A program made the translations under genes and the position numbers. A stretch of DNA of 64,000 bases, taken from positions 1-64,000 of the forward strand of contig JALMLS010000017.1 in NCBI GenBank assembly GCA_038496445.1, written 5' to 3'. The notes beneath the pieces are model-generated. The model ran no database searches. It was given only the letters and a program-made list of their open reading frames with translations, and was not told where the DNA came from. Below, one piece after another: positions 1 to 11,823 of the stretch. Position 1 is the first letter of the stretch; each line of letters starts with the position of its first letter. This DNA is from Trichosphaerium sp. ATCC 40318. Its lineage: Eukaryota; Protista; Tubulinea.

Positions 1-1478
1 TGACATTGTCGTAACTCATTCCAAATAGCTACTGTAAGCTTCGTAGGCCTAGTTATTGCGCTTGTTTTGTATACTTCTTGGGACTCAGATAAGAAACATG
101 CATTGGGCCTTTATAGCGACGGAGTAGACGTAAGTGTAACGATCAAACGCTAATTGACATGTTGTAGCAATGGAACAGTAAATTTCGTAGTGAATTCGAG
201 AGGTACTTTGAACTCTTATAAAACAATACTCATTGTACCAGCCTACGCAATCCGATAGCGTATGGAGATACAAAAGCTAATTTAACATTACAAAAAACGG
301 TACTACGGTGTATACACCTGTAATACTCACCCCCTTAGACAGATCCACCTACTATACCTCAATACACATATCAGGGTAATTGTTAAACGTTACAATGCAT
401 TATTTTCCTACATTTGCTTAAACACCTCCGAACTGCCTCTAACACGCAAAAGGTGCAATTTTTACGAGTACAGAACCTCTTTGGATAGAATCTTGGAACG
501 AATCTGTCATTTCACTCCCATTTACAATCGAATGTAACAAATCTGTTATTCATCAAACTGTCAGAACACCAATGTATAAAATTAAAGAGCAGGGAGTGTC
601 AAGAGATGGTATGAACACCAAAAAAAAACAGTTTTCAGCGAATTTGGCTTCTCGATTGACTTGTTTTTCTAGCTTGCGTAAAGAAAGGTGGTACGTGGAG
701 AGTAGGAGATATATGTGATATATACCATGTTGCTACTCAAATATGCGTTAAAGTAACGGTAGAAAATGGCGTCCTTAAAGCAGATGATAGGTACTTAATT
801 GTTTTCTTGCCTTTTTGCGTCGTTTTTACTGATTGTGCACAACTAGTTACCCTGTTCCTGGTTATGGTTGTGGGTTATGGTTTATACACGGAGTGAGTCT
901 ATGGCATAATGTGAATTATACTGTCATTCCAGAACCAAAAGATGGGAATATTTCAATACCATTATCAGTTACTATACGTTCATCGCATGATCCTCATTTG
1001 CTCGCTATGTACCTTACACATCACTCTCTCGATTTTGAGTATATAGATTTTGGAAAACGGTACAATTTATACTAAAGCAATACTGTTTTCTAACGTAATT
1101 GTAGGAACACATCAATTGTCTTGTTTGGTATGAAAAAACTGTGTTACAAAAGCAAAAAAAGAATCTATTCTTGACTGACTAATACTTATTTAGCTGTTGT
1201 TGCTACAGGAATAATATGTGTCATAATAATATTGGTACAAAACAAACCCACTATTTTTTAAAAAAAAAAAACACTACAAGCAGCTAAAGTAGTCGCTCAG
1301 CAACCAATCTAATGTTTTTTTCAAAAAGGTAATGTGCTGGAGATTAAAAAAGCAGATTGTAAAGTACAGTGATGTCAATGGTGGTGCACACCATACGACA
1401 AATGTAAACAATAATATTAGTTACACGGATTATGCAAACAAAACACCAATCAAGGGATCTCATTATCCACAATATTGA
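1..1478 (+). CDS. Single-pass membrane protein of unknown function, 5' end probably outside the window (multi-exon)
   Basis: Spliced exons read ...PLWIESWNESVISLPFTIEC...ACVKKGGTWRVGDICDIYHVATQICVKV...YPVPGYGCG...VTIRSSHDPHLLAMYLTHHSLDF, then a hydrophobic segment (VVATGIICVIII..VMCW) and stop TGA at 1476-1478. Introns are GT-AG. Confidence 0.6.
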
Positions 1479-1549
1479 AATGAGAAAATACTAAGAATAA
1501 TAAAAAAATCCCAAATCAAAAAAAAACTAGCTTCTTTCAGTTTTTTTTT

Positions 1550-3820
1550 CTAGTATTGATTCTCAGCCAAGTACTCGGCTAATTCATCTACGACTGTGGC
1601 ACAGTCAGGGCCTTCTATTGTTGCATCGTATGTTCCAACAACAATACAAGTGCTTGCATGCTTCATGTGCAAGCCATGCTTGGTATTCTTTGTATTTTTG
1701 GCTGTAAGTGACTTCTTGTTTATTTGCGTCACAATGTACTATTATAAGATAAGAAAAAAACATAAAATTTCAGAAGACAAAGAGAGTACCTTCTCTGACG
1801 CAAACGAAAATCCACTTTTTTTTATCTCTAGACGCCTTTGTCAGTATAAAGTATCGTCATATATGATCGTACTAAAATTATTCTTAAAGCCATCCAGGAC
1901 AGACGTTATGTCCTGTTCAGTAGGTACCATATCAGCAGTATCCCATACTACAGAAATGAGGAACCACACCAAAAGAGGATTCAGTTGCACAAGTCGTACC
2001 TAACCCATCCAAACCAAAGATTAGTCCGCTAATACAATAGCCAGTATCAGTAAGGTTTTCTTTTGCATAACCTAAAAAACTCATGCGTAAGGATACGGTG
2101 TTAGCGCAGAAAAAACGTGCCTCTCCATTCATCAGAAATATCATCTAAACCAGCTGCAAGCTTTATTTCATTTGGAGGCGCACTAAAACGCTTGTTTCTG
2201 GTACTTGTTCGTCCCGAAGATGGTTGTGATGATCTAAATAAAACACATGTTACAAAAACCACTCGTAGGCATTTCAAAAGCTACTGTGGTACCTAGCAGC
2301 GATTTTATCTCGTGGTGAAATAGCAATAGGTAGCGCTACAGCCTTTCTGCTCTTTACATCAGGTGGTGCTATTACCTTACGGTCTTGTACTGATGGTGGC
2401 ATAACTACCTTGCGATCCTTTACAGATGGTGGTATTACAACCTTTCTATTTGAAAGGGGTGGCGCTACTGCCTTGCGGTCTTTCACCGGTGGTATTACGT
2501 TACGTTGAGATGGTGAAGGTAAAGATTGACCTGATCTCTTAGCGACAGCTGCTTGTAAGTTGGCGCGACTATTAGCACGAGGTTGTATGTTTGCGGCACT
2601 AGTGTTACCGGCACCTCCAAAGCGCGACTGAGCTTCTGCTAGGCTTATAGTTCCTAGGGACTTATTTGTTGATTTGACAAGTTTGACAGTTCCTACATTC
2701 AATGTGTTAGTAGTTTAGGAATTCTGTTTTGATAATACCTTCTGTCAATGGTTCCTGCGGCTCTTTTGGTTTCGCACTTCTCTTAGGTGCTGATTCTCTC
2801 GCTGGTGTTCTACGTTGAGGTGAGGAATTTTGTGGTCGTACTGGGTGCTCTTCAGCATCAGGTGGAGCTCCATCAGGACCTTTAGAACCATCACCAATCT
2901 GGCAAGGCTCCTGTGCAATAAATCTGTTAATACACTACTAGCAGTGACAGTTCTACGTACCAAAAACTCACGCATTGGTTCTGTCGTTACACAGTCTTTC
3001 ATTGAACAAACAAGATTCAACCAATTCTGCAATGCACTATCTTCTGGTTTTTGTGCAAATTTCTTGATATCTGAGAATTTTTTAATCTTAATACCACCTC
3101 CTCGCAACGTATTATCTGTAGCAGCTAATACACGAAGACGTTTGAGATGCGAATCTACTCTAGCGAACTATTACGTAGTCAGGCATAGATATTTCTTTGA
3201 TTTTTTTATAATACATACCTGCTTCCAACGTCGAAAAACAAACCAACTTTGATTAGCTAAAATAAAAATTAAAATCATGTTTCATTTTCAAAAAAATAGC
3301 TGTAACAGTCGTACACTTTGAAACAAGCAGTTTATATAACTCCACCACCTTGTTTGTATTTGCACCGTTCTTCCGTGAGATTGTACCACACATTTCAACT
3401 GAGTACTGACCAAGTATTGGCTGCAATAAATAGAAATAAGTATAAAGAGTCAGAAATGGTAGTTTACGTTTGATGGAATCGTGACGTCTTCTTCTTTAGG
3501 CTTTTCTTTTGTACTGGCCGTACTTTTTTTTTCTGATGGCTTAGAGGTCAATTTTGGCTGCTGTACAGGCTCCTGGTACTGTTATATATTGTTTTTGAAG
3601 CGTAGTACCGTTCTTACGGGCGATGACACAACTTGTACAGGTGCAACGCTTGGGGCTTTAATACTTGTAACTTCTCCATTGCTAAACTTGCGTATCAATC
3701 GCTCTTGTTGTTTTTTAGATAATAAAGCCCATAGCTTTTCAATAACTTCTTCAACCGTTTCAGCAGCTGTTTGTATTAGTACTACACGACCATTTCAGGC
3801 GTACCCTCTAACGATTGCAT
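1550..3820 (-). CDS. PX domain + proline-rich/repeat linker + C-terminal profilin domain fusion protein
   Basis: ATG at 3820. PX-like core: QSWFVFRRWKQFARVDSHLKRL...LQNWLNLVC...MREFLEPCQIGD. C-terminus DEWRGYAKENLTDTGYCISGLIFGLDGLVWD...SGFSFASEKYIV...GLHMKHASTCIVVGTYDATIEGPDCATVVDELAEYLAENQY* matches the profilin pattern along its whole length. Frame is continuous from the PX core to the stop codon. Confidence 0.8.
2325..2500 (-). repeat. Coding tandem repeat of 11-12 aa (about five copies of R-K-x-V-x-P-P)
   Basis: VIPPVKDRKAVAPPLSNRKVVIPPSVKDRKVVMPPSVQDRKVIAPPDVKSRKAVALP in ORF 2274..2702. Confidence 0.8.
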
Positions 3821-3984
3821 AAATAACTCTTCGTGTAACAGTTAGCAACTTGCTAACGCGTTTATGATATTGTAGAGCTGCTCACACCTAAGGGTGCTGT
3901 CAAATACGTTAACAAAGTCAAATATAGTCTCAAACAGCCACAACCATTAAAACACAACTGCCAAATCCCTCACAAGTACCCACG

Positions 3985-6127
3985 ATGGCAGAAGACAGAA
4001 TGGACATTGATGATGACGCTGACTTGAACCTAAGCGTACAGGCACGTTCAAATAAACATTACACGTACTGGTTAATAATAAACATGCTAGCTGCGGCCTA
4101 TTTCAGAGGAGTTTATGTGTCCAATTTGTTATTGTTCCCTAAGCGAATGTATGATGACTGCATGTGGCCACAACTTCTGCAAGGCCTGTATTTTCGAATG
4201 TCTGAATAGAAAGCATAATTGTCCAGTTTGTAGCACTAAATCAACAAAAGAAACCCTAGTAAGAAACCACCAGGTAGATCGCGTTATTGGTAAGTGTAGT
4301 TATTTTGGTTCTTATTTTGTTGAATTTCACTTTGGGCGTTTTTAACCGAACGAAACACTGCAGCCGCGCCTAGAACCGCGATAAAATGCGTATACACATG
4401 GACTAAACGCTTTTTAGGGATTATTAAAGTGGAAAAAGAAAAAGCGAGCAAAATGTACTTTGAAAGCCTCATAAACGGCGGTGGCCCGTCATTGACAGCA
4501 TCGAATAATACAATACATCGACCGGCAAAGGAACTGTCGCCCATTGAGGGATTATTCCATAAACACATGAAAAGAAGCCTGGTGGCGTTTGAAGAGTACT
4601 ACCAGGTACAGAAAGAACGAAATAGTAGACCTATTGATTCATGTCTTCTTCTTCGCTTTAAGTTTTTTTTTTAACATTATTTTATCTTTGCTCTTCCTTT
4701 TAGATTAGCTCTAACCGTTCGTTGTTTTAGAAGCTTGAAAACAAGTTTTCAAAGTCAATTATTGCAACTAAAGAGTCTTACGCACAAGACATGGCAGCAT
4801 CAAGAAGGGAAAGTAAAGTTAATGAACTGAAAGCAGAATGCGAGGGCAAAGTCAACACATTAACGGAGTCTTTTAATATGTCAACAGAACATCTCTTAGA
4901 ATCTTATGACAAGTACGTTATAAATACCGAAAATCACGTTAGTGATAAAAAACAAAAAAAATTTGCCTTGCTAGAAGGAAAGCTTTGGTTTAACGAACCA
5001 AGGCAACTTGCTTCGTTTCTTGGCATTTTTTGTTTTCTTTCTTAATTTTTTTGCACATTCCTCCTTTGTTGTGCGTGTTTCTCCCTTTGCTAATGTTGCT
5101 TTTTGTTCAGTTATATGAAGTCTTTTGCACCTGCTCCTGACTTTTTACCTGTCACAGTTACACTTGTTGTAAAGGCAAAGAATAGAGAGTTTCAAAAAGT
5201 TGTTATAAAACCTACAGATAGTTGTGAGGAGTTAAAGAAGATTTTACTTGAAAAAATGGCAGCTGTAGGTGATCCAATAACAAAACTAACAAAAAACAAT
5301 ATTTTTGTATTACATAAACAAATGCCTGGACAGAGCGAAGCATCAGAGGTAAGAAGATTCTACAAAAGGAAAAAAAAAAAAAATCAAAAAAAAAGTCAAG
5401 ATCTCATTTCTCTATGTAGGTTATGATAGCGGATTCAAACAGGCCGTTACTACAGTACGGACCAGAACCGGGAGATTCATTTATACTGATAGGAAAATTA
5501 AAGACAAAGAGGTACATTAGCAACAGATATTTTTTTTGTTTTTTGGTGCCAATTCTGTCACTGGCTTTTGGCTTGTAGCGCGTGTGGTATCCACTTTTTT
5601 TTTGTTTCATAGCGAAAATTAATGTTTTTTTTAGTGATCAGCCAAAGATGTGCTTTAAAGGTATGTTTGGGTTTTTTTAGTATTTTGAAGTTAACGCTTA
5701 TTATTAGATGTTTTTTCAAAAAATCAAAGCGGTGACATGGTAATGGATTACTTCACATGTCGTGATTGTAAAGTAAATTGTACGTTCAACGTTTGAGGTT
5801 TTTTTTTACTAATACACTTGCTGTATTTTTAACTCACTTGTTTGATACCTAGGGATATGTAAGAACTGCGCTGAATCATGCCATAAAGAGCATAATGTTG
5901 TTGAGTATATCAGTGGTCATAAACCTACATGGGCATGCTGTTATTGCGTACGTTACAATTTACGATTTGGGGTTTTTCTTGAAAATCCTATTTTTATTTT
6001 GTAGTTTTTTTTGTTTGTTTGTTTGTTGTTACCACATGTGAGGTTCCTCCTTTATAAACCCTTACTTATTTTCTTATAGTACAGGAGTAAATGTTGTGGA
6101 CTACGTAAAAAGAAGAAGGGTAAATAG
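3985..6127 (+). CDS. RING-HC E3 ligase-like protein with coiled coil, ubiquitin-like segment and C-terminal UBR-type zinc finger
   Basis: RING: CPICYCSLSECMMTACGHNFCKACIFECLNRKHNCPVC. C-terminal exons give MDYFTCRDCKVNWICKNCAESCHKEHNVVEYISGHKPTWACCYCYRSKCC; stop TAG at 6125-6127. Confidence 0.8.
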
Positions 6128-6220
6128 TTGTAAAAAAAAAAGGAAGAAAGAAACGAGATTTCAACCCCAAGAAATGAAACTCCAATCTTTCGTTTGGATG
6201 ATAATAAAAAGAGATTTGAA

Positions 6221-9213
6221 TTAATTCTTCACTTGTGATTCATCTGTTTGTTCTTTTGTATTATCTTCAGTTTGAGTAGTGGCTTCTCCTTCGGCCTTTG
6301 GTTGATCATCTTTCGATGCTTCAGTTCCATTTTGAGCTTTCTTTGTATCTTCATCACCATTTTCTTGCTCAATAGGTTTTGGCACTGGTTTTTTTCTTTC
6401 AGGATGTTTTACTTTTGTTAGTTTAGGACTTTTTAAAGAAAATTTAAGTCCAGATCTATCATAAGTAGGTGGTGGACTCCACCACCCATAAACAGACCTA
6501 TGAAAGAGTTAATCATACATGAGGTAACTGTTTATGTATCTACTCGTACCCAATTAATGGAATAGTACGCATAACGCCATCAACGTATGTTTCGTACTCT
6601 TCTTGACCTTGAACCTGTTTTTGAGCTTTCTCTGCTTGTTTAATACTTTCTGATAGAATATCACCAATAGTTGCAAGCAGCTATACATCCAAGTAAGTAA
6701 AAAACCAAAGGCACTAAAATAGTTTCATACTGGACTCTTTTTCTCAAGTTCTACAGCTGTATCTCGGATTAAATTAACGTGGTACTCTACTTTTTCTTTT
6801 GTCAAAGGACTTGTATCCTAGTGCAAGAATGAAAGGTTAATAAAACTGATCAATGAAGAAAAAAAAATCCTCAAAATGCGTACAAGTGCTAATGCAATAA
6901 CAACATCTCCACGAAGATCTTTTGTTTGTGTATAGATTTGATGAGATTCAGACAAATGCTTGCATATCGATTCATTAAGAGTATTCACATCTGCTGCAAG
7001 TTTTTTAGGCATAGCCTCATCGCCTGTCATTACAAGTGAAGGTACATATCTAAAATCAAATACCACGTGAGATGATAAAATAGGTGAAAAAAAAAATCAC
7101 GGGAAGAAAAAAGACCAAAAAAAACAAGACGTACCGTACAGCACCAAGTCCAACAAAGTTAGGTAATTGTACGTTGTGTAAGTCCTCTTCATTTTCAACA
7201 AGTTTTTTGAAAACAGGTTGGAGTGTATAAGCGTTTTCAATTAATCCGACTTCTGTACTTAATTTTGAAATATAGCTATCAATTAGTGCTACGGTCATTT
7301 GTGGGATATTACAGCTTGCAAGTGGATGGTATCGAATGCATTGATGACCTTTGAATCTAACTAGTTCAAGATCCAAATCAATAGCTGATGTATGGTTCAT
7401 GTCATGTAGGATTTGTTCGTTTATGGCATCTAAAATGTTCTGAGGGTTCTTTGCAGTGACAGATGATCCTGTAGGTTGATAGCGGAATAACACTTGCATA
7501 GAAAAAGGAGGAGATTCAGTGATAATATGAGGGACATTTTGTAGCTTATTATAAAGATGTGAGACCTACAAAAAAGGAGTTAAGATAGCAATAATGTTGA
7601 AACGGCAAAATGAGGAAAAAAAATGCTTACCAATCGCTTTGATACTTGCATGCACTCACGGAAGTGGCTAAGTCCATTACGTTGTAATACTAACCACAAT
7701 GGTAAAGAAATCAACCCATGATCTATGAGTGTATCGACAGGCATGTTAGAGTTATCAATTGCGTTTTGAACAACTGGTTCTGGTGCTTGAACTTGTTCAT
7801 GTCTATGATTCAAATCTGATCTATAGAACACTGTTGTGATCTCATAAGACGTTGATTGAAAAAACAATGCCGAATTGAAAACAAAACTATTTGCACTTCG
7901 TATTGCAGTTAAAATATCAGGACAATCAGGGCTACTTAGTAAAATAGCGCCTTCGCTAAAAAAAGATTATTAAAATGTAAGAAAAAAAGAAGAAAAATAA
8001 TGTCATGTTTTTGACATTTGACACTTGACACTTACCCTTCAACATGAAGCCATAATTCTTGTCGTTTAGCTATATCACTGTATTTTTTTATGTCATCTGC
8101 GTCACCTCCAATTTCTGAACCGCTACGTGCTACTACAGCAAAAGGTGTATTGTCGCTTTCGTCTCTTAGCTTGGCGAGATCCTAGAAAAAAATTACATGA
8201 CAAAAAACTTCGCAAAACATCTTTTTTTTGATCAACTTCAAAAAAAAACCACTGTACCTCTGTAAGCTCTTCTGGGCTCGAAATAAAACGCAAAGAATTC
8301 AAAGGTAATCCTAAGTTTGTTATTAGAACGTATTTGAACAATGTTTAATTCCACAGCATACCAAGAAGATAAAGAGCGTGATTTAATTCCTGTCCTTTCC
8401 ACGCTAAAAAAAAACCAAGTTAACACATAAAATACACGAAATCTCTGAAACATACTAGTATACACTATAGGTAGCTTCCCCTTAAACGAACGGAATCCTA
8501 AAGTTCCATGGCTTGCGAATTTTGCACCTAACGCCTCGCGTAATGCCGACACACGAGCATCTTGCATAGTTCGTGTGTACATACCTAGGGTTGGGTACAA
8601 TTTAGCATTCACAAAAAAGAGAAGTACTGATAATGTTTTTTTGAAATATTTTCTTACCGCTCATTGCTGGTGGCAGGTTGAGGATAAAGTGGATCCAATT
8701 AATTGTTTGGCCATTTACAATCGAAGCGAACTGGTTTAACTGCGCGCTGCTCATATTTATGCGTAAATAAGCGACAAAAGCCTCTGACAGTGCAATGGCG
8801 TCAGATTGGTCATGGGTGCTACGCGAGGTTATTACAAGCGTGTTTTATAAACGTCAAACAAGATAGCGAACTAAAAAGAAAATGTACCCATCATTTAATA
8901 ACGAGTCTCCTGAGGCGATTTTTGTAATATTTACGAGTCTATCTAGCACTTCCTAGCGTGAGTGTCACGTCAATCAAACAAAACAACGGAAGTGGCTGAT
9001 TCTTTTGTGTGGGCATTACTTACCTTTATATCTACACTCTCTAACGCTGGTTGAGCTTTTAATTGTGATTTGCTGTAATGTTGTTAAAATCACTACCAGT
9101 CGCGATGACACATACCTAGCAACATTTCCCTCACTAAGAATGTGCTTTTTGAAGTAATCAAAATAATTATGTAAACCTCCTACGTCTTGTGTGGGTTCCT
9201 GCTGTTCTGCCAT
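6221..9213 (-). CDS. PDXDC1: PDXDC1-like pyridoxal-dependent decarboxylase domain protein
   Basis: Spliced motifs LWLHVEG, ANSFVFNSALFF, LPLWLVLQRNG, FVGLGAV.Y and DGVMRTIPLIGSVMGWWSPP match PDXDC1 hallmarks (WLHVEG; EGVLRQIPVVGSVLNWFSP). Confidence 0.75.
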
Positions 9214-9485
9214 GATGGTGTGAGGTGTTTGTCAATTTTCACAACAGGCGACGTGTCGCTAACCTCGCTTAGGGTTTGTACAAATAAGTCTTACACCAAA
9301 ACTGTTGATACCTCAAACTGGGAATGTCAGGCGGTATACCACGTAATCTTGCCCTGGGTGGCGCTGTGATTGTAGGTATAGGTAGCGGTACGTATGAACG
9401 TAACAACAAAACGTATTATGTAAACTTACAAAAATAATAGCTATTTACGCGTACATTCCAATGTTCGAACGTGTTAGGTGCGTAA

Positions 9486-9722
9486 ATGAGCGAAATTAAA
9501 ACTAAACAAAACAATAGAAACGAGAGAATAGCAGGTGGTTTTATTATACCGCCTGAACCCAAACAAGAGGATCCAAACGTGGCAGAATCAAACATACCAG
9601 AACAACAGGACTTGACACAATTAACAGCACCCCCGCCATCAACACCACTAAGCAGAGCACAGCGACGAGAACGAGACCTGGCACGATTAAGAGAACGCCG
9701 ACCACCAACAAGAACCTTTTAG
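9486..9722 (+). CDS. Small hypothetical disordered protein (78 aa)
   Basis: ATG-started intronless ORF with biased, protein-like composition. It fills the gap between PDXDC1 and the convergent MVP-like gene. No homology recognised. Confidence 0.4.
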   Translation: MSEIKTKQNNRNERIAGGFIIPPEPKQEDPNVAESNIPEQQDLTQLTAPPPSTPLSRAQRRERDLARLRERRPPTRTF

Positions 9723-9737
9723 TACGCAAAGTGCAAT

Positions 9738-11823
9738 TTATTTCCTTATTAATGGTAATACAAAGAAGAAGAACGATAACAGCATTGCTACGATTGCAAC
9801 AACATATGTGGCAAGGACATCTGGTTGAAACAAGTAAAAACCGGCCTAAAAATTAAGTGTCACGTGTAGGTATTTATAAACAAAAATATCCACGTACACC
9901 TTCCAGTTTTATGAAAGCTGGTATTTTTTTGACCACGTGCGCATCCAAAGGAGGCCAGTATCTGTACAAAGAATAAGTATAAAAAAATTTCACTGAGAAT
10001 GGTTTTTGTTTATATGTCAACATACTCAGTTGGTCCCACAACGAGCCATCCTAGACAGAAGTATAAGCAAGTTTTTGATTGTCACAAAGTCAAAAAATAC
10101 GTACTGGATCCACCTTTACGTGTGACAGCTCTTTTGCCTGATGTATCCTCAAAAGAAGCTAAAGCACGAACTTGTAGCGCTTCGTCCTCTTCACCATGTG
10201 TAAGCATAATATTTAAATAATTGCTTCATCGTACCGCCAAGCAAGTAAGCAGTTCGGATGCCAGCTGGAATACTCTCTCCAGGTTTCAAGAAGAAATTGG
10301 CTTCACCTTTAACAAGTCTGGAGTGGCCAAGTTGTATTTTTCCTGAGAATTAGTGAGTTTTTTTAATAGTTGGATAATATGTACCAGTTTCTGGATCTAC
10401 AGGATTTACGATAATACAGTATTGACGCTTTGTTAAAGATGTAATGGCGATTGTACGAACCAACTAACAGAAGTATTAAAAGGCTGTAAAGGAAAAAAAA
10501 CCAGAAGTGAGTTCTGCTTATGCAGATTTTCTTTGAAACTAACCTGCTCATTAACACCAACAATATGGGTTTCTTTACTTTCGTTTGTAATCAGCCATTC
10601 ATCACCAGGTTGATGCTCTTTAAAAATATCAGTAAGGTACTTATGCCAATCGACATCAAGCTTACCGTTTCCAAATTCATCAACAAATCGGTTGTTTGCT
10701 CTCATGTGTAGAGCAATCTTTTCTGTTAGAACTTGAGCTTTTACTGTCCTTACAACGACTTCATCGACAGCCGGCAGATAAGCACCGGTAGCTTTAAAGA
10801 GCCACTCTTCACCAGCCTTACGTTCGTTACCATCTCGGTCTACGAATTGTTTTCTAGCACGCAAATGGATGGCTACGAATTAGGTTATAAAACAACTTAC
10901 GTAATTCATCTCCCGTACCCTCATTAGGTTGAAGAACCACTGCTTTTATAGTGTGGACTATTCTCACTTCAATTTGTGGAATATACGTTCCAGGACCATA
11001 AAACAACCATTCCTTTCAAAATGTCAATTTTTCACAAAATGACTTTTTTTCAAGTTAAAAAGTTTACTTCTCCTGCTCTTCTTGGTACTGGTGTATCTCC
11101 CTCTGATTGTTGGGTAAATCTGTCATCGAAATCTCTGGTAGCTTGTAGCAGCAGGGCTGTATTTGGAGCCACAACCTTTAACGACTCAATGCGTCCAGCA
11201 ATTTTTTCACCTGAATAAAGCCTTAATACCGTTACAACGTACTAGTAATACATACCTGGGTATAGAGGGAAAGGTGATTGCTCTAAACGCACTTCTTTAT
11301 CACCGTGCCTTAAAGTAGCCTATTTCTTGTTATAAATGGCTCTGGACGCTAAATTTTTGTACCTGGCCGTCTTTATCAACGACTACGTCGCCTTTTTCGT
11401 CTTTCACAACAGGGTCGTTGACAATAACCTAAAAAATGTCACTGAATTGCACACTTTTGCTCTCAACGTTACGTAATGGCGAGGTGGCACAACTATTTCT
11501 TTAACAGGACCATAAACGAGTTTTTCTTCCTCTTTGCATCTAAGAAGTTAATATAAGCGTCTGAAACAATAGTTTGTACACTCAAACCGTTCGAGAAAAA
11601 TATAATTTTACTTGAAAATGAAAACCGGATTGTTTTTCATACCTGAAGGTCTTTGGACCTCTCACTACGCGCACCTATACCTGTTAACACTTGTCTTAAA
11701 AAAAACCGCGGGTGTACGTACTGTATTTGTGTTTCTGTCCAAAACATGGGCGAAATGGTATGGAGGTATCTTGTATAACAAGTTTTGAGGGTAAATGTAC
11801 GAATCTTGGTAGCTCTTGGACAT
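9738..11823 (-). CDS. MVP-like: Truncated major vault protein paralog (repeats R1-R7) with C-terminal transmembrane tail anchor
   Basis: Colinear with the MVP N-terminus: [119 protein letters not shown]. The last exon encodes [35 protein letters not shown] (TAA at 9738-9740). Confidence 0.88.

Follow-up and report, generated by a model that had tools for sequence, protein, structure and literature searches.

Profilins are among the most conserved single-domain regulators of actin. Canonical profilins are standalone proteins of ~14 kDa that start with Met-Ser-Trp, and their classical ligand is poly-L-proline. They are normally recruited to membranes indirectly, by phosphoinositides or by proline-rich partners. 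(Formin FH1 domains, VASP, and WASP-family proteins are membrane-recruited ligands of profilin.) Here we describe a gene from Trichosphaerium sp. ATCC 40318 whose predicted product carries a profilin at its C-terminus, behind a putative PX-like domain and a long linker. The gene lies on the minus strand at 1550-3820 of the window. The window spans contig C47 (JALMLS010000017.1) from its start to 64 kb, and the assembly is 70.3 Mb in 642 contigs. The combination of a PX-like domain with a profilin is undescribed in the literature that we searched, where we found no account of a PX-profilin protein.

Most likely, 1550-3820 is one protein-coding gene with 13 exons, predicted to encode ~559 residues (Table 1). 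After the introns are removed, the minus strand gives a 559-codon reading frame with its ATG at 3820 and a TAG at 1552-1550. These are exactly the limits that a first-pass annotation of this DNA had given. That annotation had also described a single reading frame, and the frame is single once 12 short introns are taken out, but in the genomic DNA it is not continuous: the reading-frame listing has no uninterrupted open frame across 1550-3820. The motifs FRRWKQF, FLEPCQIGD, and EWRGY all cross reconstructed splice junctions. The introns are 38-59 nt long, with most lengths grouped at 45-59 nt; eleven are GT-AG and one is GC-AG. Most donors read GTACG(T/A) rather than GTAAGT, and nearly all of the introns have a CTRAY branch motif close to their 3' end.

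Codon usage also describes this as a coding region. We used a score that was trained on 32 long open frames from elsewhere in the same genome. The frame of the gene model totals +174 bits, versus -301 and -403 bits for the other two frames. The score in the model frame is positive in every exon of at least 70 nt, while the best-frame scores of the introns lie between -6 and +5. (We rejected a 12-exon model with a 197-nt intron because that intron contains an in-phase, coding-like exon at 3572-3468. This is exon 3, which has phase 0 at both ends and adjoining introns of 45 and 47 nt.) The least certain of the 13 exons is the first, a mini-exon. The frame of exon 2, which has no match in Pfam, stays open for another 10 codons upstream without an ATG, and exon 1 is the sole way to supply one; intron 1 is 38 nt and has the branch site TACTAAT. 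All of our Pfam, PDB, protein-library, profile, and fold queries were run exon by exon rather than on the spliced protein. Joined exons were used just for frame continuity, residue numbering, and composition.

As far as sequence can tell, the C-terminal part of the predicted protein (residues 432-559) is certainly a profilin domain, complete but divergent. Exon 13 by itself matches the Pfam profilin family (PF00235) with 45.1 bits (E = 1.3e-11; the cut-off is 25 bits), and a scan of the genome with PF00235 gives 43.1 bits at this locus. The best matches of exon 13 in PDB are plant profilins; in the ESM Atlas, this exon has no useful neighbours. We also built a profile from 106 profilins, which were fetched with the genome's canonical profilin as the query. 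Exons 10 to 13 match this profile in the right order, at positions 6-27 (9.0 bits), 33-53 (2.8 bits), 58-65 (-1.0 bits, which is not significant), and 68-126 (39.6 bits). The length of exon 12 exactly fits the gap in the profile. The first-pass annotation had proposed both a complete C-terminal profilin and the retention of the aromatic residues that bind poly-proline, and both proposals hold up: the groove residues W434, Y437, W461, Y553, and Y559 are all found. (W434, which corresponds to Trp3 of profilin, is present only if intron 9, the GC-AG intron, is spliced.)

The closest described proteins are the canonical profilins, such as the 126-residue profilin that is encoded elsewhere in this genome. 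Like them, the domain is full-length, with 126 profile positions covered, and it keeps Trp3, Tyr6, Leu11, Gly24, Gly27, Trp30, the LA(D/E)YL helix, and the C-terminal Tyr. Exon 13 is ~30% identical to the genome's canonical profilin. Unlike canonical profilins, the domain is the C-terminal part of a 559-residue protein and, in the favoured model, has no Met of its own. The near-invariant residues Asp8, Gly13, and Ala31 are substituted.

We then turn to the other end of the predicted protein, where an 84-residue N-terminal region is followed by the PX-like domain (about residues 85-208). We consider it likely that this domain has a PX fold, on the basis of several weak signals that are consistent with each other. 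The motif R134-R135-W136-K-Q-F aligns with RRYKQF in the genome's own PX domains, with Trp instead of Tyr or Phe. When exon 5 was compared to same-genome PX pieces with phmmer, it scored 10.0 bits (E = 3e-4, in a small set), and its best match was KWTIFRRYKQF, a PX beta3 motif on another contig (C2). We also scanned 12 exons with a rough profile of the genome's own PX domains. The top two were exon 6 (8.1 bits) and exon 5 (6.2 bits), and they were placed in the correct order, with exon 5 at 3-13 and exon 6 at 66-93. Aligning the last 26 residues of exon 6 to own-genome PX pieces with hhalign gave P = 0.005, with a probability of just 7%. In the ESM Atlas, the three best neighbours of exon 6 and all ten of the best family-bearing neighbours are PX clusters; the similarity of those three, 0.88-0.89, is graded by the tool as a lead only, and exon 6 does not include the RRW motif. 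Exons 4 and 6 had nothing meaningful among PDB sequences. For exon 4, which has no family match, the PX reading comes from position and pattern only.

The domain resembles PX proteins and sorting nexins (PF00787; for instance SNX3 and p40phox) in having Arg-Arg-aromatic and then x-x-Phe where beta3 is presumed to meet alpha1, in the ~70 residues from the Arg-Arg motif to the terminal ...FL, in a helical C-terminal half with an L..WL pattern, and in its closest language-model neighbours. Unlike them, it is below Pfam's detection by exon, and it has Trp for Tyr or Phe. Also, BAR, SH3, and other partner domains of sorting nexins are not present. Membership in the PX family is thus plausible rather than proven, and we do not file the domain there. 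Canonical binding of phosphatidylinositol 3-phosphate (PtdIns3P) needs four side chains: two from an Arg-Tyr pair, a Lys in the PsiPxxPxK loop, and a helix-2 Arg (Chandra et al., PMC6449406). No human PX domain that lacks even one of these four binds PtdIns3P, and many of those domains have no lipid ligand at all (PMC6449406).

The two domains are separated by a linker of 223 residues (209-431) that has an isoelectric point (pI) of 11.0 and is 13% proline. Within exon 8, it contains five tandem 11-residue repeats, PPxVKDRK(A/V)Vx. Tandem Repeats Finder reports a period of 33 nt, with 2.2 copies, at 2373-2444. The internal proline repeats that the first-pass annotation described are therefore real as repeats, but the linker that it called proline-rich holds just PP dipeptides, and the repeats are not classical poly-L-proline. 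A word search with exon 8 found no relative. We also considered whether the linker could be a ligand for its own profilin; this is unlikely, as its longest run of proline is 2.

The same gene is found on contig C8, at 99.4% identity. We rejected the idea that the C8 copy is a paralog, because the alignment of C47:1-9916 to the tail of C8 (C8:814136-823999) extends over the full length at 98.6% identity; the whole 9.9 kb is thus either allelic or an assembly overlap. Between the two copies, 5 of 1680 exonic bases differ (0.30%), as do 4 of 591 intronic bases (0.68%), and the surrounding 9.9 kb differs by ~1.4%. Exons differ less than introns, four of the five exonic differences are synonymous (one synonymous difference is in exon 7), and all 13 exons are open in both alleles. 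The gene is real, coding, and lineage-specific. As a separate matter, the overlap between C47 and C8 means that features in 1-9916 of the window are present twice in the assembly.

Our best explanation for the locus as a whole is a PX-like domain, a basic tether, and a profilin that would act together at a membrane. We put the probability of this at about 50%. An order of PX-like domain, linker, and profilin is the most parsimonious architecture for the gene model. A membrane that is acidic or carries phosphoinositides would retain the protein through its basic PX-like domain (pI 9.9) and polybasic tether. There, the tethered profilin would capture proline-rich actin assembly factors, actin monomers, or both, and local actin assembly at that membrane would be raised. 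Formin FH1 domains, VASP, and WASP-family proteins likewise raise the local amount of profilin or profilin-actin where actin is assembled on a membrane, but they recruit profilin non-covalently, by poly-proline tracts; here, a candidate membrane binder and the profilin would be one polypeptide. We infer this function from the predicted protein. In particular, actin binding by the profilin module is uncertain because the contact loop is altered, and delivery of G-actin, which the first-pass annotation had proposed, is only something that we infer, given that loop and a linker with only PP dipeptides. The fusion is not yet secure, as it rests on a predicted GC-AG splice and on a domain that is weakly PX-like.

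A number of observations weigh against this explanation. Some of them concern intron 9 (2120-2072), which is both the junction between linker and profilin and the sole GC-AG intron, and on which the fusion depends. GC-AG introns are rare in general. Also, intron 9 contains an ATG at 2084 that is in frame with exon 10 and would give a protein beginning with MSFLGYAKENL. (The sequence ATG-AGT-TTT-TTA-G encodes Met-Ser-Phe-Leu-Gly, which resembles the canonical MSWQAYVDNSL.) The distance from this Met-Ser to Tyr6 is canonical, the profile scores the two possible N-termini nearly equally (3.0 bits for DEWRG and 4.0 bits for MSFLG), and four other profilin loci in the genome are standalone, with their own ATG. 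So, the locus might give two products: a PX-like/linker protein that ends at a stop just past exon 9 (or past exon 8, should intron 8 be retained), and a separate, divergent profilin of 129 residues that begins at ATG 2084, from a start site inside the upstream gene. The isoforms may coexist. The first-pass annotation had named an independent start before the profilin exons as evidence against a fusion, and an in-frame ATG does exist there. But this start would place Phe at position 3, where 106 of 106 aligned profilins have Trp, and only the fusion splice supplies that invariant Trp, as W434. The Phe and Leu codons, TTT-TTA, look like the pyrimidine tract of an acceptor. Exon 9 seems to be coding in the fusion frame, with a density of codon score that equals that of the other exons. 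If intron 9 were unspliced, the upstream frame would stop after 6 codons (TAA at ~2101), just 17 nt before ATG 2084, which leaves no room for a separate promoter. The base at -3 of ATG 2084 is C; in the three standalone profilin starts that we read, it is A. If intron 9 were not an intron, its splice signals (donor, branch site, and acceptor) would all be there by coincidence: the donor AG|GCACGT departs from the local GTACGT consensus only at the C, CTAAC is a perfect branch site, and the stretch is 49 nt long and in phase. Finally, one of the genome's F-box-profilin paralogs (described below) has WRGY, as GGWRGY, inside one open frame. These points, Trp3 and the coding character of exon 9 among them, favour the fusion. 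We think that intron 9 is probably spliced, so that the linker and the profilin would be one polypeptide, and that two separate products are unlikely. The Met-Ser in the intron may be left over from a profilin gene that was once standalone, or may start a minor isoform, and the Trp-Gln codons of the former profilin start may have turned into the pyrimidine tract of the acceptor.

Other observations that count against a membrane-bound fusion concern the N-terminal domain. No scanned exon, including exons 4 and 6, matches Pfam's PX family at E <= 10 (the gathering cut-off is 21.6 bits; exon 5, at 12 residues, is under the scan's 20-residue minimum and so was unscanned). A six-frame scan of the genome with PF00787 gave 36 candidates, and 1550-3820 is not among them. 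Exon 6 had two phmmer matches among 1.84 billion representative proteins, neither with a PX domain: one is a PKD-domain protein and the other is repetitive. (There was no self-match, so the genome's proteins are not in this library.) The AlphaFold prediction for exon 6 alone is poor, with a predicted local distance difference test score (pLDDT) of 52. We did not see the PsiPxxPxK (PPK) loop: exon 6 has no PxxP, and the corresponding stretch reads GGGIKIKKF. At the column of the helix-2 Arg, there is a Glu, in a weak profile alignment. Because two of the four PtdIns3P side chains are apparently lacking and the match to Pfam PX fails, targeting to endosomes or phagosomes, as suggested by the first-pass annotation, is not supported, and from these residues canonical PtdIns3P recognition or endosomal targeting is not predicted. 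The PX-like domain that it named is not confirmed by Pfam; the weak signals from the RRW motif, the own-genome profile, hhalign, and the ESM Atlas agree with one another. The fusion might also be real with an N-terminal domain that does not bind lipid, being either a degenerate PX fold that binds protein (as in the class of human PX domains that bind no lipid) or a small alpha/beta domain of some other kind; the absence of relatives for exon 6 would fit. The protein would be a soluble adaptor whose profilin reads proline-rich partners. We think that this is rather unlikely. The RRW motif and the L..WL....FL pattern near the C-terminal end, their spacing, and the neighbours found with the language model each speak for a PX fold, and the high pI of domain and tether alike would favour attachment to acidic membranes, with no need for a specific pocket. 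The remaining points against our explanation are that the profilin's actin-contact loop is changed (YGKK in canonical profilins, TAKNTKNTK here, with a 3-residue insertion), that no proline run in the linker exceeds 2, and that we found no orthologue of the PX-like or linker parts in any collection searched. (Two metagenome scans, with exons 6 and 13, also found no relatives.) The lack of orthologues and the possibly relict start codon in intron 9 would be expected of a young, lineage-specific by-product of fusion with poor or incorrect splicing and little function, if any. We find this quite improbable: all 13 exons are open in both alleles, most of the exonic differences are synonymous, exons are less diverged than introns or surroundings, and the key profilin residues are intact. 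The membrane-bound PX-like/profilin fusion is our preferred explanation.

Scanning the genome for profilins gave 17 exon-level matches, which include the PX-like/profilin gene itself on C47 and C8. The canonical profilin is intronless and is found on two contigs (C202 and C410) with identical scores; these are probably alleles. Its best relative among 5.8 billion proteins is just 60% identical, so the organism's own proteins are not in the public collections that we searched. Three more loci encode standalone profilins with introns and their own ATG, and the intron positions in the PX-like/profilin gene differ from those in these paralogs. These standalone paralogs have similar GTACGT-type donors and longer introns (~60-165 nt).

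At three further loci, a divergent, two-exon profilin is preceded, at a distance of a few hundred bases, by an F-box (Pfam F-box-like, 30-37 bits). As in the PX-like/profilin gene, a divergent profilin would be at the C-terminus of a larger protein, and one of the three has the WRGY motif. They differ in having an F-box as the N-terminal partner, and in two of them Trp30 is lost. The profilin that is linked to the PX-like domain resembles the canonical paralog more than it resembles the F-box-linked profilins, so the two kinds of fusion appear to be independent. It is a tentative and somewhat doubtful idea that profilin is a reusable module in this genome, with one copy tethered to a membrane-binding PX-like domain and three on F-box ubiquitin-ligase handles. 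If so, then the profilin groove would be a general reader of proline-rich or actin partners, with one use at membranes and three in protein degradation. A natural covalent link between profilin and a candidate membrane binder would, if true, be a ready-made experiment on local profilin concentration and the assembly of actin at endomembranes. Along with the F-box-profilin genes, it would imply that evolution can turn the profilin fold into a modular recognition domain.

Table 1. Features of the putative PX-like/profilin gene, its upstream neighbour, and the other profilin loci. Positions without a contig name are in the window; aa, residues of the predicted protein.
Feature	Position	Strand	Description	Score or evidence
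Exon 1	3805-3820	-	Mini-exon; ATG at 3820; MQSLE + 1 base	Donor GTACGC
Exon 2	3618-3766	-	N-terminal region resembling an amphipathic helix, aa 6-55	Codon score +17.7 vs. -12 and -46
Exon 3	3468-3572	-	Lys/Pro/Ser-rich spacer, aa 56-90	Codon score +10.5
Exon 4	3315-3420	-	Presumed beta1-beta2 of the PX-like domain, aa 91-126	Codon score +6.8
Exon 5	3219-3256	-	NQSWFVFRRWKQ; presumed beta3 with RR(Y/F)-type motif R134 R135 W136	
Exon 6	2961-3167	-	Presumed alpha-helical half of the PX-like domain, aa 139-207; C-terminal ...EFL	
Exon 7	2739-2910	-	Start of the basic, disordered-looking linker, aa 208-265	Codon score +27.6
Exon 8	2293-2692	-	Main linker exon, aa 265-398	Within a 142-codon open frame; codon score +46.8
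Tandem repeats in exon 8	2328-2492	-	Five 11-residue repeats, aa 332-386	Motif listing
Exon 9	2121-2233	-	End of linker and first profilin residues (...DDISDEW434R, first base of G436)	Codon score +13.9
Intron 9	2072-2120	-	49 nt, GC-AG	AG|GCACGT donor, CTAAC branch site, T-rich acceptor
Exon 10	2000-2071	-	Profilin positions 6-27 (YAKENL...GLDG)	9.0 bits
Exon 11	1873-1947	-	Profilin positions ~29-54, including W461	2.8 bits at 33-53
Exon 12	1790-1827	-	Profilin positions ~55-67, IKKSGFSFASEK	Aligned at 58-65
Exon 13	1550-1738	-	C-terminal half of profilin, positions 68-126; stop TAG at 1552-1550	PF00235 match
Shared upstream region	3821-3984		164 nt common to the PX-like/profilin gene and the divergent RING-finger gene	
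RING-finger gene	3985-4345	+	ATG at 3985	Pfam zf-C3HC4_2, 34.6 bits
Canonical profilin	C202:3832-4209; C410:21093-21470		126 residues, intronless	Identical scores
Standalone profilins	C2; C30; C63		Three loci with introns and their own ATG	
F-box and profilin	C131:48704-49700; C10:561927-562900; C10:482300-483417		F-box upstream of a divergent two-exon profilin, same strand	

Upstream of the PX-like/profilin gene, there is a RING-finger gene in the divergent orientation. Because the ATGs of the two genes are just 164 nt apart, we presume that they share a promoter, and the intergenic stretch suggests a compact bidirectional one.

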